The notes under the pieces were generated by a model, which was given only the letters and a program-made list of their open reading frames with translations, made no database searches and was not told where the DNA came from. Of a DNA stretch of 64,000 nt, positions 1-64,000 are shown in pieces; the first letter of the stretch is position 1; each line of letters begins with the position of its first letter. Source of the DNA: Haliotis cracherodii (taxonomy: Eukaryota); contig NW_027266343.1 of assembly GCF_022045235.1 (NCBI RefSeq), forward strand, positions 13,268,001-13,332,000. Reading direction: 5' to 3'. The position numbers were made by a program, and so were the translations under genes.

Positions 1-448
1 TTTCTTGGTCTGTCTCACTTGAACATAATAATCTCCGTCATCGCCATTGTCACGCTGTCTCTTTCCTCCGAACAGTGACTTCCTTGTTCCATGGAAACCC
101 GCTTTCCTGTGATCCAAAGGTTGTGGGGATACCTGATGAAGAAACATGCATACAGTAAATTTCAGTGTTGGCTTAACAATTACATGTAAAAGCATCACAT
201 TTCTTTTTTGAAACCGCCTCATCCAACCCTTTAACTATCCATTATCCATATCCATTACTGCATATATATTTCTGTCTGCTTTATGTATTTAAGAAGTAGC
301 TGTTCTCTGTTCTATTATACACAATTCGACAAACCTCACTGTCACTGCAAAGTGATTCAAAGCCACTATCACGTGAGTCTTCATCTTCGAAAACAAGGCT
401 CTTTGGGATAAAGACTTCTGGTAAATTCTGACATTCTCTTCTCGGCAT
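1..448 (-). CDS. cdc25: Cdc25-type phosphatase copy 0, 5' part only (window-truncated)
   Basis: Exon 1 448..335 ([38 protein letters not shown]), GT..AG intron, exon 2 from 132 to the window edge; homologous to the full copies. Confidence 0.85.
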
Positions 449-533
449 TGTGGGACAGATTTCTTCAAACAATTCTGAATGTTAAGAAAGTATATTTATG
501 ATCATGTATGTGCACGTTATGCAGTTTGCAGGT

Positions 534-1030
534 GAATGATGATGTGTCTTGCATCTGTTGTATATAAACCTGTACTAAAACAACATATTTACATAACAAA
601 GACAGCAATCGTTGATCGATTGGGCGACCAATCGATCGCACTTTCTTTATTCTATTTAATGAAAACTTATGTAAACATTAACACATTAGAGCAGATCGGT
701 TAAGAATGTTGGCTTGGTGTGAAAATGCGGGATCGCTTGCGCCCCCCTGTAGGTATGGAACTACCTAAATGAAGGTGTGAGGGGGATTATCCCAAGGTAA
801 TCACCAGGTAGGACATCAAATGTACCGTTAACACATGTTTTGATAAAGCAGGATTCAGTTTGTTGTGGTCGTGCGCTGAATGACAATTTAGGACGATTTG
901 TATTTACATGGCAAACGAGATGTTTCATCAAGGTGCAATGTGGCTGTGTTAAGATGTAAAGTAAGCAGGTTTATCAAGGGCCAGTTAGAATGATCTGGAT
1001 TAGGTGGACTAGATTCATGTTTGTAGAGAA
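534..1030 (-). promoter_or_regulatory. Core promoter and conserved upstream module, copy 0
   Basis: Inr-like TCATTC (+1 at 537), TATA variant TTTATATA starting at -31, then the shared upstream block. Confidence 0.6.
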
Positions 1031-1479
1031 TGTCTTGTCAGTTACGTGTCTATTGATCTTGAAAGGGAGGCACATGGAAAAAGTTATTGGTTTTCTGTTT
1101 AGTGTGTGTGTGGTTCTATGGCAACTTTAGCAGAAACAATAAAATGATTTGACTTTATGAGGTTATTACTGTCTGTATGTTTTCTTGTTGGACGTTAGAA
1201 TAATTATACAAGCACGATTTGATAGTGGTTCAGATTTTATTAAAGATAATTTATGATTATTGAAATGTTTTCTGTGACTTTATTTTATTTGAATCTGGTA
1301 TTCGGCTCACAGTCATTTACAGTAGATTTTGTGCTTTAGCCTCAGTCTTATAACAACGCTGTGGTAATACCACGAATATGCCACCACGAATGGGTGTCAA
1401 ATATTGTACCAATATAAGGAATGGAATTTAAGATCTTCAGCATAGTGATCAAACGACTTGATATAACGATCTAATGGCA

Positions 1480-2925
1480 TTAAGAACATCGCTGGCTGTT
1501 TCAAAAATGTTCACCAAATATAATCCATTCATGGCTATTTCCAGCAAATAAAAAAACTGTCTAGATCATTTACCGTTTGGTTGCGAAACCGTTTTTAATT
1601 CACAAAATATATATATATCAATATTCATTAACAAATTAACGTGTTAATAATTAAAAGTAAATTGCTTCAATAGACATAATCTTCCTTGTTACGTCTCGCA
1701 TGTGACTAATATAACCTAGAGTCTTGAACGATTCCTTGCAATGTTTCCCAAATGACTATCCACTCGCGATAACAAATGAGTTGAATATTTAATAATTCAA
1801 CAACTTGTTTGGTAGATGAATGGCATTTGCTGATGGATGGAAAGCCCAAACAGCACTCCCGAGCAACAAAATTGGAAGACTTTTGACATGAAATATATGT
1901 AACAATACCTTCGTTGGCAAATTATCAAAAACATTATGATGATTTAAGGAATACTACTACTTTTCATCCATGATCCTGAGCACGAAAAATGGACCCCCAG
2001 AAAGTTTGGGATGAAACTATTTCAAGAGGATTTCCATTCAGAAAGAATGATTCGTAGCATTGTAATGTGTCAGCCATTCTGAATACAATTTCCTTCATCG
2101 TATCAAGATTTATTGTTAATTTCAATTTATTGCAGTACAAAACTACTTTGTCTCGACTCTTTTATAAACTTAAAACTGAGAGATCAAACAATACAATGTC
2201 ACATAAATAACTCAATAAATTCTAAATTAATCCTGCATATGGTCTTTCAACAATATCATTAACAAACAAAGAGAAAAGAAAAGGTGATAACTGGCACCCT
2301 TGACGTACGCCAATAAACAATAAAGAAATGTATATCCATTCTTCACTGAAATACAAGCTTGAACTTTTTCATACACGCTTCTTAACAATCTAAAGGTCTT
2401 GCCTTTGACATTTCCCAGCACAAGTTTGTAATAAAACACCTATACCTGTCTACAGAGTTAAAGGCTGACTTTAAATCAATAAAGGCGCAATACAACTGCC
2501 CATTATATTTATAGGTACTTATTAATGATGGTGCTGAGAACAAAAATATCATTGTGTGTCTGAAAACCATAACTTACCCAGCCTGCTTATGAATGAAAAA
2601 ATGTTCCCGCTTGGCCCAATGATTTCATCTATTAATAAAAACCTGAGAGAAAATTTTACCCGAAACTTCAAGCAATAGTCAATAGTTTGGTGGACAGTCA
2701 GATCTACCCTTCTTATAGAAGGGAAATAATAACTCAGTTGTACCATTCGGGTGGATACATACCTGTAGATAAAGATTTTAGCCGATTAATACTTAATTAT
2801 GGTGCATTTTTGAAATTTCAATTGGAATTCCACTATATCCGGGAGTTTTACCAATTTGCATATATTGAATTGCATCAATATTATCTTGATACCAGATTTC
2901 TTGATCCAAATCATCAAAATACTTT
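1480..2925 (-). mobile_element. Degenerate LINE reverse transcriptase fragment (L2/CR1-group-like), spacer 0
   Basis: Frameshifted RT motifs LYCAFIDLKSAFNSVDR and LGNVKGKTFRLLRSVYEKVQAC, and a GVRQGCQLSPFLFSLFVNDI-like segment. Confidence 0.8.
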
Positions 2926-2929
2926 TTAC

Positions 2930-61622: not shown

Positions 61623-61783
61623 AGGGGCGATGGGATATCCATGTGCATAAAGCATTTGATCGTTTCGCCGAATGTCCGGGTTCGATTCCCCAAATGGACA
61701 CAGAGTGTGAAGCCCATGTCTGGTGTTCCTCCCGTGATTTGCCTGGCATATTGCTCAAGCGGCGAAAAAACTAACTCACTCAC
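61623..61783 (+). mobile_element. Degenerate tRNA-SINE
   Basis: GGGGCGATGGG head, GGTTCGATTCCCC B box, TGTGAAGCCCAT core, (ACTC)n tail. Confidence 0.7.
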
Positions 61784-62074
61784 CTATATATTTGGCCTTA
61801 ACTTGCAGTTTGGAAGTAAGCCACATATATCGAAGCCAAACAAACCAAGTTACCCTTTTAAGCAAACACAAATGTCTGAAGCAGCGTGATAATTCAACAG
61901 GTGTTGGAAACCGAGATAAGAAATTGCACACAAAACATGTCTGTTTATGACGACAGTAATATATGTCACTTCTAAAGCTGAAATAGGACATGAAACCAAT
62001 ATGAAATACAAAACATTTCATTGTGTTACCTAATTTCAGTTAACATCCATCCAACCATTCAGATGTTTTCTACA

Positions 62075-62564
62075 ACCATGAGTCTTATCCAGCTAATCCA
62101 GATCATCCTAACATACTCTTGATAAATCTGCTTACTTTACACCTTAACCCAGCCAGTGGGGAATCCACGCAGAAAGTGTGCCTGTATTAAATATCTTGTT
62201 CCCAAAGTAAATACAAATTGTCCTTAATTGTCATTCAACTGACGACCAAACCTACTTGAATTCTGTGTTATCAATACATGGACCACCGGCACATTTGATG
62301 TCCTACCTGGTGATTACCACGGGATAATACCCCTCACACCCTCGTATGGGCGGCTCCATATCTACCGGGGACGCAAGCGATTGTACATTCACACCAAGCG
62401 CACTTTCTTACTGGGTAAGCGTTTAACTATGTTTTCAATAGCCATTATGAATAGAGAAGGTTAACTGGATAATGAAACGATTAACGAGTGTTTTCATTGT
62501 TATGTTAATATGTTGTTTTAGTACAGGTATATAAACAGGAGAGTGCACAGGCATTGTATCATTC
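62075..62564 (+). promoter_or_regulatory. Upstream module and core promoter, copy 8
   Basis: TATAAA at 62530 is 31 nt before the A of TCATTC (62561); the homologous block lies upstream. Confidence 0.7.
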
Positions 62565-62638
62565 GACTTCAAACTGTTCAACTGTCTAACTTACATCTCT
62601 TAGCATTACAGAAACAATTTGAAAATACTTGTGTCATA

Positions 62639-63921
62639 ATGTCACGAAAGCAGATCACGGTAACTATTTATTGATGGCGACATTTATACTTTTTTGACAA
62701 CTATAAGGCCGGCGTCTTATGTTCATTTAATCATAATTCGAAAAAAACCCTAAGGATGAAGACAATCATATGAAAACTATTTCTTTTCATCTTTCAGTTT
62801 TCCAGTGACCTGTCAAATAACCTTGAGTGTCCGACTTCACCGGACGTTTTCATCAAGAAGAGCCTTGTTTTCGATGATGACAACTCTCTAGACAGTGGCT
62901 TTGAATCTCTTGGCAGTGACATCGAGGTTTGTTACATTTCATTTAACACTATGGGCAGTTCTTATTTGCAGAAATACTTAGGTATATAAATACTATACTG
63001 TAAATGCTTGAAACAAGCAAAATTAATATTTGACAGAAATATGTATTTTCATGAACACAATTCTAATAAAAATAAAACATTTGATGATATGTTTCTTCAT
63101 CAGGTGTCGCCACTACCTTTGGATCACAGGAGAACTGGTTTCCATGGAAAGAGGAAGTCTCTTTTCGGAGAAAAGAGACGACGTGATGACGATGACGATG
63201 GGGATCATATTCTAGCTCGGCAGATGAAGAAACTTAAAACAACCAATGGTGTCCCCAAAGCCCAAACAGAAGTCACGTCAGAGGTTATGAAGTCAGCCGT
63301 CGACAAGATGGAACAGGGCACTGATCTCATTGGTGATGGCTCACAGGTTAGTTGGAGACTAATTATTTCATATTTATCAATCAAATACATTCTTTAGAGT
63401 TAAAAGATGCACGCTGATTTTGAAGATAACGAGGTAACTGGAAAACAACTTCAAATTCATATCAATAACGTTAGTGTTTGTGTTCCAGAATCATTGCCTT
63501 CCAACTATTCAAGGAAGACACAAGGATCTCAAGTCTGTGGCTCCACACACAGTTAGTAAGCTTCTGGCAGGACAGTACGATGACGTCATTTCCAGCTACA
63601 GGATCATCGACTGTCGTTACCCATATGAATATGAAGGTGGTCACATTGAGGTATGCTACTGTCTTTAGATAAACAATACAACCATTGCCATGTAATATTG
63701 TTCATAGAATAACACATTCAGAGCATATTGATTGTATTTTGCCTAACATCTGGTAACAGTCTAAGTTTACATTTGACCAATTATTTACTTCAGGGTGCCG
63801 AGAACCTTCACAATGAGACTCTGATAAAAGGCTTGGTGACCAGCCTACAAGAGAAGGACTCCATTCAACGGAACATCCTGGTCTTCCACTGTGAATTTTC
63901 ATCAGAGAGAGGCCCGAAACT
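62639..63921 (+). CDS. cdc25: Cdc25-type phosphatase copy 8 (3' end beyond window), with an extra first intron
   Basis: Exons 62639-62659 (MSRKQIT), 62798-62926, 63104-63346, 63489-63650, 63794-63921; [21 protein letters not shown] and [10 protein letters not shown] present. Confidence 0.9.
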
Positions 63922-64000
63922 GTAAGTATTTTGTCAGATCACTTACTTGAGACACTGAACGATTCTAACATTACGATAACGATGCTCAGTTTAAACGAAA

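Follow-up and report, generated by a model that had tools for sequence, protein, structure and literature searches.

The window analysed here, 64,000 nucleotides of Haliotis cracherodii (C80:13,268,001-13,332,000), contains ten Cdc25 loci, located by motif scans and by a tblastn search whose query was a related protein. The open and complete copies number six (c1, c3-c7); another two run past the window edges (c0, c8), c2 carries a TGA, and the tenth locus is what remains of a last exon (Table 1). The same tally was given in a preliminary description of this stretch and is confirmed by the motif scans, tblastn and exon models; the ATG spacings listed there (7830, 8608, 9361, 8816, 9033 and 8365 bp from c0 to c6) and its 308-aa protein model are reproduced exactly. 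A self-BLAST of the window returns direct repeats of 8-9 kb with 87-96% identity between ~2 kb and 52 kb. The tandem layout proposed earlier holds for c0-c6, which alone run head to tail, but not for c7 and c8, which are on the opposite strand, so that c6 and c7 stand head to head.

Table 1. Positions of Cdc25 copies, promoter boxes and spacer SINE heads, in window coordinates.
Feature	Position	Strand	ATG	Exons and remarks
c0, intact Cdc25 gene, 5' part in window	1-448	-	448	exon 1 335-448; exon 2 5' part 1-132
c1, intact, 308 aa	6442-8278	-	8278	8171-8278, 7725-7967, 7448-7609, 7183-7310, 6816-6933, 6442-6609
c2, TGA copy	15042-16886	-	16886	16779-16886, 16330-16575, 16053-16214, 15784-15911, 15417-15534, 15042-15209
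c3, intact, 309 aa, XP_071089154	24369-26247	-	26247	26140-26247, 25691-25936, 25414-25575, 25132-25259, 24734-24851, 24369-24536
c4, intact, 309 aa	33185-35063	-	35063	34956-35063, 34507-34752, 34230-34391, 33948-34075, 33550-33667, 33185-33352
c5, intact, 309 aa, XP_071089156	42163-44096	-	44096	43989-44096, 43483-43728, 43206-43367, 42924-43051, 42525-42642, 42163-42330
c6, intact, 310 aa, XP_071089157	50326-52461	-	52461	52348-52461, 51608-51850, 51331-51492, 51070-51197, 50698-50815, 50326-50493
c7, intact, 311 aa, XP_071089158	55083-57036	+		55083-55196, 55311-55556, 55718-55879, 56033-56160, 56315-56432, 56869-57036
Relic, Cdc25 last-exon fragment (…RRLHIDVSPLKLSL)	59995-60075	-		closest to C-terminus of c11-c13
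c8, intact seven-exon gene, cut by window end	62639-64000	+		62639-62659, 62798-62926, 63104-63346, 63489-63650, 63794-63921
TATA-like box (GGTATATATAC) of c3	26363-26371	-		116-124 nt upstream of c3 ATG
Same box, other minus-strand copies	563-571, 8394-8402, 17002-17010, 35185-35193, 44202-44210, 52569-52577	-		
Same box, plus-strand copies	54964-54972, 62525-62533	+		every copy has one upstream
SINE tRNA-like head in spacer	29010-29081	-		Rfam tRNA matches
Same SINE insertion, other spacers	37688-37759, 46917-46988			three adjacent spacers only in total

The copies were modelled as exact six-exon genes with all introns of the GT-AG type; c8 has seven exons, of which the extra first one comprises 7 codons (MSRKQIT) and the final two lie past the window, up to C80:13,332,530. 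The whole of c0 occupies C80:13,266,583-13,268,448, with the remainder of the gene left of the window. In c2 the TGA is codon 23 in exon 1 (16818-16820) and the rest of the frame is open. The genes are not new as sequence, having already been annotated by NCBI: XP_071089151-158 and XP_071089160 match c0-c7 and c10 at 100%. Identity is 100% over 211 aa for c0 (XP_071089151), for c1 (XP_071089152) and for c8 with a RefSeq 326-aa model, and XP_071089155 agrees with c4 at all 309 aa before adding a read-through tail; for c2 a 211-aa product from Met99 is modelled despite the TGA (XP_071089153). In most of the RefSeq models translation begins at an internal Met, giving 211 aa, and several models read on into the copy that follows; they are thus mostly chimeric or shortened at the N-terminus, and the longer proteins of Table 1 are putative main products.

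With the flanks included, c0 and c8 prove complete and open, and the cluster, predicted earlier to extend past both edges, comprises 14 gene-like loci and 2 relics in ~101 kb (C80:13,263,723-13,365,067). Eleven of the 14 are intact. The defective ones are c2 and two copies outside the window, c9, a fragment that keeps the active-site motif, and c10, in which the active-site Cys is changed to Arg in a frame that is open and annotated as coding in RefSeq. A gastropod-conserved gene of the 344-aa type lies ~100 kb away at C80:13,164,125-13,166,727 and is probably the separate full-length Cdc25 sought in the preliminary description. Elsewhere in this genome there are two 4-gene Cdc25 clusters and, on another chromosome, ~250 near-identical and apparently unannotated copies of a compact Cdc25 gene.

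The 10-residue HCX5R (C-X5-R) sequence is the same at each of the window's eight active sites, which the preliminary description had called intact in most copies, and a second, 13-residue motif of the catalytic domain is intact as well. Structures were compared using RefSeq model P0001, whose residues 1-211 correspond to residues 99-309 of c3; it matches 3op3 (CDC25C) with E 5.4e-54 over residues 6-192 and 1cwr (CDC25B) with E 1.4e-53, the rhodanese-like catalytic domain aligning over its full length with the solved human CDC25 domains. Pfam PF00581 is assigned in precomputed form to all relatives, and a single ORF running through exon 3, intron 3 and exon 4 scores 20.3 bits, just below the cut-off of 22.2. 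The residues aligned with R488, R492 and Y497 of CDC25B, which by this numbering we take to be those of remote substrate recognition, are R, R and Y in the abalone protein. A genome profile search with PF06617 (M-inducer_phosp) gave no match, nor did its controls, which makes this a weak result; this domain is also absent from the precomputed Pfam annotation of the abalone proteins, which lists PF00581 only, and is present in that of octopus and chiton Cdc25 proteins. We infer that the cluster proteins would remove the inhibitory Thr14/Tyr15 phosphates from CDK1/2.

Each 8-9 kb unit is a self-contained gene with a TATA-like promoter, six exons and a protein of 308-311 aa, the abalone proteins together spanning 308-326 aa. 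The proximal promoter, ~260 bp, can be aligned across c0-c7 and c10. The N-terminal ~120 aa contain DSGFES (of DSGxxS type) and KRxR motifs together with basic stretches, and the DSGxxS motif resembles the betaTrCP degron of CDC25A and might serve in destruction by SCF-betaTrCP. The SINE common to three adjacent spacers, which we read as a trace of the duplication history, is a dispersed element of ~160 bp, the same 160 bp occurring on many chromosomes with 92-94% identity; a 4-kb query that includes it produced 10,311 first-look candidates.

Assemblies are known to go wrong at tandem repeats, and it could be asked whether the units are mis-assembled haplotypes or over-expanded repeats. Nothing specific points in this direction, and it is extremely improbable: the units differ by 4-13%, by indels and by SINE insertions. 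Every bin is also covered by an independent DNA run that another study produced from this species, and its contigs are identical to the window; 39-45% of the sampled 31-mers occur in three related organisms, and H. rufescens RefSeq proteins fall in the same 90% clusters.

Evidence for transcription comes from RNA contigs of the public runs X19 and X20, which join exons exactly at introns 1, 2, 4 and 5 of c3 (four of the five predicted). Introns 1 and 4 and the spacer upstream have no coverage in these contigs, unlike in the DNA run X2, which covers everything, and the RNA variants match at least three copy types (c0-type, c4/c5-type and c3-type). The organism label of X19 and X20 (organism E) differs from that of the assembly, and the contigs may therefore derive from orthologous copies of a close relative; run X22, of RNA type and with the same label as the assembly, left the gene uncovered. 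In clams, spawned oocytes give higher values for six CDC25 probes (PMC4254928), and in Platynereis a maternal cdc25/string-like transcript, abundant at first, is quickly cleared (PMC4974748). These data lend indirect support to a possible role in the germline or embryo.

The older pairs have pairwise dN/dS values of 0.2-0.35, and pooled omega is 0.36 for c0-c6 (P 1e-8), 0.54 for c1-c5 (P 0.011) and 0.38 for all 13 copies, with a dS of ~0.5 between c7 and c1-c6. Constraint is relaxed in the youngest copies, some pairs of which are near 0.9 on few substitutions. The three indel events in coding sequence are each a multiple of 3, as opposed to only 6 of the 27 in introns, and under neutral substitution alone the probability that a reading frame stays open is 0.16 at 4% divergence and 0.02 at 9%. 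Taken together these values argue for purifying selection on the copies, beyond what homogenisation alone would give. The preliminary description had named assembly artefact, lack of transcription and dN/dS near 1 as the findings that would count against it; the independent DNA run, the spliced RNA contigs and pooled values of 0.36-0.54 speak against all three, the copies being transcribed, spliced and under purifying selection.

An unstable region might nonetheless spawn duplicates that are tolerated and decay slowly, their transcription leaky and their frames open through youth or gene conversion from a single working copy, in which case the cluster would be a neutral by-product. The omega of 0.54 in the youngest copies, the three defective copies and two relics, and the read-through chimeric transcripts among the RefSeq models are all in keeping with such a process. 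We nevertheless regard it as very improbable, since the old copies c7, c8 and c11-c13 (dS 0.3-0.6) are intact, which neutrality makes very unlikely, since no coding indel breaks the frame against 21 intron indels that are not multiples of three, and since promoters are conserved and at least three copy types are correctly spliced.

At least four old sub-types can be distinguished, c0-c6, c7/c10, c8/c11/c12 and c13, separated by dS of at least 0.5 and differing in 5' exon structure. [c10..c11] is a copy of the segment [c7..c8], and c11/c12 are paired in inverted orientation. The units would have multiplied as wholes in head-to-tail order, for which unequal crossing-over is the simplest mechanism; a segmental duplication of two genes and an inverted duplication would have added to this. 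Some copies later decayed (c2 by its TGA, c10 by the active-site change, c9 to a fragment, plus the two relics). In the tree the California and Indo-Pacific abalones form separate clades. These observations support evolution of the cluster by birth and death of genuine Cdc25 genes; the lineage-specific amplification proposed at the outset is borne out by the coexistence of intact, nonsense, dead-site, fragment and relic copies and by the abalone sub-clades. Repeated lineage-specific amplification in several abalones and bivalves, turnover with dead copies, a raised dN/dS in the youngest copies and a second array of ~250 copies in the same genome would also be expected if extra Cdc25 copies biased meiosis or gamete competition, as drivers or suppressors, with no benefit to the organism. 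Such genetic conflict seems improbable to us, given that pooled omega is well below 1 and that the intact copies show no variation at the active site or at the substrate-contact residues.

We consider it probable that the window is the core of a functional, birth-and-death cluster of short-form Cdc25 genes, whose copies raise or diversify the supply of a dosage-sensitive activator. Selection keeps most copies functional, and they are transcribed and correctly spliced; their number would increase or diversify activator supply most plausibly in the germline, in oocyte maturation or during rapid cleavage. A benefit of dosage is only one of several possible reasons for the persistence of the array. 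The copies might instead have divided the labour, having split or changed tissues, stages, CDK-cyclin targets or regulation, with the N-terminal regulatory part diverging fastest and dead-site copies such as c10 perhaps acting as substrate traps or regulators. The sub-types with their high dS and different 5' exon structures fit this, as do an N-terminal dN about twice the catalytic dN in old comparisons and the open, annotated frame of c10 despite its Cys-to-Arg change. However, c1-c5 differ by 2-4% in protein and share promoter sequence, for which redundancy or dose is the better fit, and a recent change could be enough to explain the open frame of c10, so that we judge a division of labour to be unlikely, if worth keeping in mind.

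RefSeq suggests that comparable arrays exist in H. rufescens, H. asinina, Mya arenaria and Dreissena polymorpha. Consecutive accessions on one chromosome number 18 in H. asinina (one 90% cluster), 24 in Dreissena and 18 in Mya, adjacency in these molluscs being deduced from accession order and shared chromosome only, and H. rufescens proteins share 90% clusters with c0-c7 and c10. The earlier statement that Cdc25 genes do not form long arrays consequently holds only for the model organisms it named. Our literature search found no paper that describes or explains mollusc Cdc25 clusters. To our knowledge Cdc25, a textbook dosage-sensitive switch, is represented by two to four dispersed genes in the animals examined to date; H. 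cracherodii has at least 11 intact copies in one cluster, other molluscs seem similar, and the largest array seems to have escaped annotation. More tentatively, abalones and perhaps molluscs in general may have made Cdc25 multi-copy, the 14-gene cluster, the two 4-gene clusters and the ~250-copy array together supplying CDK-activating phosphatase in a burst as oocytes mature or during the rapid spiral cleavages, a reading that we hold to be possible although doubtful. If it is true, copy number would be a tunable and possibly contested trait. Questions raised are how the cell-cycle network tolerates or exploits tens to hundreds of activator copies, and whether there is a link to broadcast spawning, oocyte maturation or spiral cleavage.

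Among known systems, human CDC25A/B/C (1c25, 1qb0/1cwr, 3op3) resemble the abalone proteins over the catalytic domain from end to end, with E of 5e-54 to 1e-45, but are ~470-580 aa in length as opposed to 308-326 aa for the abalone copies, in which the PF06617 N-terminal regulatory domain is undetected, and mammals have three dispersed CDC25 genes rather than a tandem cluster. Drosophila string and twine and C. elegans cdc-25.1 to cdc-25.4 are small sets of paralogues with specialisation in the germline and early embryo, where cleavage cycles are controlled by maternal supply and timed destruction; these two and four genes are non-tandem, in contrast to the 14 gene-like loci in 101 kb, and further clusters, of the abalone. 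The sets in other molluscs are similar in consisting of many near-identical 'M-phase inducer phosphatase-like' proteins of ~200-330 aa, yet the tree indicates separate amplifications in different abalone lineages. Histone arrays share with the abalone cluster the head-to-tail arrangement of self-contained units, each with its own promoter, and arrays of that type are a plausible route to much transcript in a short time; the likeness is one of layout only, and relative to classical homogenised arrays the abalone units are longer and more diverged (4-13%).

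Ten Cdc25 loci were found in the window by tblastn with a 326-aa relative (P0002) as query, and self-BLAST of the window reveals direct repeats of 8-9 kb with 87-96% identity running from ∼2 kb to 52 kb. A six-frame scan recovers eight Cdc25 active-site motifs (six minus-strand, two plus-strand), each with the second conserved motif nearby. All 35 introns of c1-c7 in the exact exon models are of the GT-AG type, and these models reproduce to the nucleotide the ATG-to-ATG spacings of 7830, 8608, 9361, 8816, 9033 and 8365 reported in the preliminary description, as well as its 308-aa protein (c1). 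The tandem array proposed there holds as a head-to-tail arrangement for c0-c6 only, c7 and c8 being inverted relative to these copies; the predicted continuation past both window edges was borne out by exon mapping in the flanks. Repeated ORFs in the spacers (for example 4906-5289 and 28071-28487) matched no family in Pfam searches of single ORFs and look like chance ORFs. Throughout, searches used single exons or RefSeq proteins, with exons joined for alignment, dN/dS and tree calculations only.

Cdc25 loci and associated features (bare coordinates are window positions; c0-c13, Cdc25 loci of the cluster under study)
Feature	Position	Strand	Remarks
c0	1-448	-	cut by window edge
c1	6442-8278	-	308 aa, exact exon model
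c2	15042-16886	-	TGA at 16818-16820, exon 1
c3	24369-26247	-	exact exon model
c4	33185-35063	-	exact exon model, 309 aa
c5	42163-44096	-	exact exon model
c6	50326-52461	-	exact exon model
c7	55083-57036	+	exact exon model
Last-exon Cdc25 relic	59995-60075	-	
c8	62639 onward	+	cut by window edge
c9		+	fragment without exons 1, 5 and 6
c10	C80:13,341,947-13,343,645	+	all six exons open, active-site Cys replaced by Arg
c11		+	
c12		-	
c13		-	identical with P0002
TG/GTAA donor	33185-33190		at the c4 stop; c1 and c3 have it at the equivalent position
SINE, tRNA-like head	29010-29081	-	
SINE, tRNA-like head	37688-37759	-	
SINE, tRNA-like head	46917-46988	-	
Older Cdc25 gene	C80:13,150,097-13,152,637	+	∼100 kb upstream of the cluster
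Older Cdc25 gene	C80:13,164,125-13,166,727	-	∼100 kb upstream of the cluster
Divergent Cdc25 gene	C80 19.576 Mb		long introns
Four-gene Cdc25 cluster	C80:47,255,976-47,286,064		
Four-gene Cdc25 cluster	C80:49,806,803-49,832,817		

The full extent of the cluster was established by a whole-genome search with exon 3 (1.18 Gb, 80 contigs) and subsequent mapping of exons in the flanks. It covers C80:13,263,723-13,365,067 (∼101 kb) and contains 14 gene-like loci, 11 of them intact, and two relics, in the order relic, c0-c6 (minus), c7 (plus), relic, c8-c11 (plus), c12 and c13 (both minus), with no further Cdc25 copies within 20 kb on the left side or in the 17 kb retrieved on the right. The c10 locus, which is annotated as coding in RefSeq (XP_071089160), can be read as a pseudogene of very recent origin or as a candidate pseudophosphatase. 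The block from c7 to c8 is repeated as that from c10 to c11 with an offset of 18.8 kb and 89-93% identity, and c11 and c12 are paired in inverted orientation (91%). This layout suggests that units would have multiplied by unequal crossing-over, with occasional larger or inverted duplications. Three adjacent spacers share, at an equivalent position, a SINE of ∼160 bp with a tRNA-like head that the other spacers lack; copies of this SINE with 92-94% identity are scattered across many chromosomes. The shared insertion marks a sub-lineage of unit duplications and is useful for working out the order in which units were duplicated. Separately, a ∼370-bp spacer segment (30176-30542, plus strand) has relatives of 76-83% identity immediately upstream of c7, c10, c11 and c12, but in c3-type units its upstream distance from the ATG is ∼3.9 kb. 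Possibly this is an ancient upstream regulatory block that insertions have pushed away from the gene.

An assembly artefact was considered as the source of the repeats and is practically excluded. Divergence between units is 4-13%, with numerous indels, the SINE is confined to three spacers, and all 30 bins of a 4-kb stretch are covered by a DNA run of the same organism made in a different study (X2), with contigs identical to the window. Of the sampled 31-mers, 39-45% are found in runs of three related organisms, and RefSeq proteins of H. rufescens share 90% clusters with copies from the window.

Some 260 bp 5' of the ATG can be aligned across c0-c7 and c10, and every copy has in this region a TATA-like box, GGTATATATAC, located ∼105-125 nt before the start codon. 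The product of exon 1 begins M-(A/P/S)-R-(R/K) and includes a DSGxxS motif, the type that serves as betaTrCP phosphodegron in CDC25A; exon 2 encodes conserved RKSLFxGKRxRD and KKxK stretches and ends in LIGDGSQ, and exons 3-6 encode the catalytic domain. An additional short 5' exon is found in c8, c11, c12 and c13 (MSRKQIT in c8), which in c0-c7 and c10 is fused with the following exon. Over its whole length the catalytic half can be aligned with human CDC25C (3op3, E 5.4e-54), CDC25B (1cwr, E 1.4e-53) and CDC25A, and identity to these solved domains settles the fold at the level of sequence comparison. Residues R488, R492 and Y497, through which CDC25B contacts its substrate, have conserved counterparts in the alignment. 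Pfam on single ORFs yields one Rhodanese match, below threshold because the exons are short. The N-terminal domain PF06617 was not detected genome-wide, in a search that says little since it gave no match in any control genome either; with this domain unseen, the proteins are classed as short-form Cdc25. By analogy with the family, they would dephosphorylate Thr14/Tyr15 of CDK1/2 and thereby activate these kinases, and would be short-lived through the DSGxxS motif.

The cluster genes are already annotated in RefSeq, imperfectly. Our models of c0-c7 and c10 show 100% identity to XP_071089151 to XP_071089158 and XP_071089160, with genomic order kept, and most of these entries start at an internal methionine, Met99 (211 aa), the c4 entry including the full 309 aa. 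RefSeq transcript models continue from the last exon of one copy into exon 2 of the next, using a donor GT that overlaps both the terminal Trp codon and the stop codon (TG/GTAA). The modelled tails of c1, c3 and c4 are read-through between array units; in XP_071089152, XP_071089154 and XP_071089155 exon 2 of the downstream copy is out of frame and adds 38-57 aa. The RefSeq model of c8 continues in frame into the c9 fragment.

Evidence for expression comes from Logan contigs of two public runs of one study, X19 and X20 (organism E), over window positions 23300-27300. These contigs skip intron 5 of c3 (24537-24733, with ends CT..AC, that is GT..AG on the gene strand) as well as ∼24852-25131 (intron 4), ∼25576-25690 (intron 2) and 25937-26139 (intron 1), coinciding exactly with the modelled exon borders, and no contig covers intron 1, intron 4 or the upstream spacer. 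Both runs therefore contain spliced mRNA. In X19, 20 of 66 contigs are at least 99% like c3 and others carry c0-specific letters, including a 6-nt insertion in exon 1, or letters specific to c4/c5, so that at least three copy types, or their organism E orthologues, are transcribed. These contigs, from runs labelled organism E rather than the organism of the assembly, speak against the possibility raised in the preliminary description that no copy is transcribed. An RNA-type run bearing the latter label (X22) contained nothing on the gene.

Pairwise dN/dS (Nei-Gojobori) is 0.20-0.27 against c7 and ∼0.3-0.35 against c6; among c1-c5 it ranges from 0.23 to 0.94, on only 7-18 synonymous differences per pair. 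When each variant is counted once, the pooled ratio is 0.36 for c0-c6 (77 nonsynonymous and 59 synonymous events, P 1e-8), 0.54 for c1-c5 (P 0.011) and 0.38 for all 13 full-length copies. All three indel events in the aligned coding sequence are multiples of three, as are 6 of the 27 in the introns of c1-c6, and under neutral substitution alone an ORF would stay open with a probability of 0.16 at 4% divergence and 0.02 at 9%. Pooled ratios of 0.36-0.54, the indel pattern and the odds of ORF survival together speak against a dN/dS near 1, the value that the preliminary description had named as fatal to its claim. Constraint is clearly looser than expected of a single-copy core cell-cycle gene. 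A dead array was rejected as a reading, and neutral turnover of copies is possible but less likely. The analyses establish self-contained genes that have promoters of their own, an intact catalytic machinery and correct splicing, under selection and with turnover of copies. Their purpose might be to provide the germline or early embryo with Cdc25 in large or precisely staged amounts, a proposal that draws on analogy and indirect literature.

The cluster is not the only source of Cdc25 in this genome. Two four-gene clusters on the same contig (C80) belong to the same abalone-only clade. Of the two older genes upstream, that on the minus strand is orthologous to an H. rufescens protein of 344 aa, a type conserved among gastropods that groups with Patella Cdc25 proteins. 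This gene is probably the ordinary conserved Cdc25, for which it is the best candidate, and the cluster may have grown from its neighbourhood. On contig C3, copies of a compact and complete Cdc25-like gene follow one another at intervals of 2.62-2.65 kb across 658 kb (C3:42,764,022-43,421,915), a span of match coordinates that corresponds to ∼250 copies. The 150 units scored, from 290 first-look candidates, share at least 97% identity in the catalytic exon (71 aa), have no stop and retain the catalytic motif. No close match exists among NCBI H. cracherodii proteins, and the C3 array therefore seems to be unannotated. Among relatives with a name, an H. rubra model of 216 aa comes closest, with 63% identity by BLASTP using a 239-aa ORF that reads through an intron and 90% by tblastn over the 71-aa catalytic exon.

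In a maximum likelihood tree of 49 proteins, obtained by a quick search with SH-aLRT as the sole support measure, the three C80 clusters fall within one abalone-only clade with support of 98. Copies c0-c6 group with an H. rufescens protein, c8, c11 and c12 likewise form a group that includes an H. rufescens protein, c7 and c10 form a group of their own, and c13 joins orthologues from H. rubra and H. asinina, from which it follows that the c13 type is old. The main rival to a high or staged supply is a division of labour among the four old sub-types. H. rubra and H. asinina also form a separate group, and the groupings imply that amplification occurred separately in different abalone lineages; conflict-driven amplification is a possible but less likely cause.

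At E 1e-10 or better there are 2,890 protein relatives, and among the 120 of these that were listed, those with names are nearly all short "M-phase inducer phosphatase-like" proteins from molluscs. In H. asinina, 18 proteins encoded on one chromosome (XP_067656492-513) fall into a single 90% cluster, and Dreissena polymorpha (24 proteins) and Mya arenaria (18) have runs of consecutive accessions on one chromosome; with adjacency taken from accession order, all three sets are read as putative tandem arrays. We found no published description of mollusc Cdc25 arrays in the literature. A study of clam oocytes mentions seven CDC25 genes listed for the oyster genome and finds six CDC25 probes higher in spawned oocytes (PMC4254928), and in the annelid Platynereis a maternal cdc25/string-like transcript falls from >250 to <15 FPKM between 2 and 4 h (PMC4974748).
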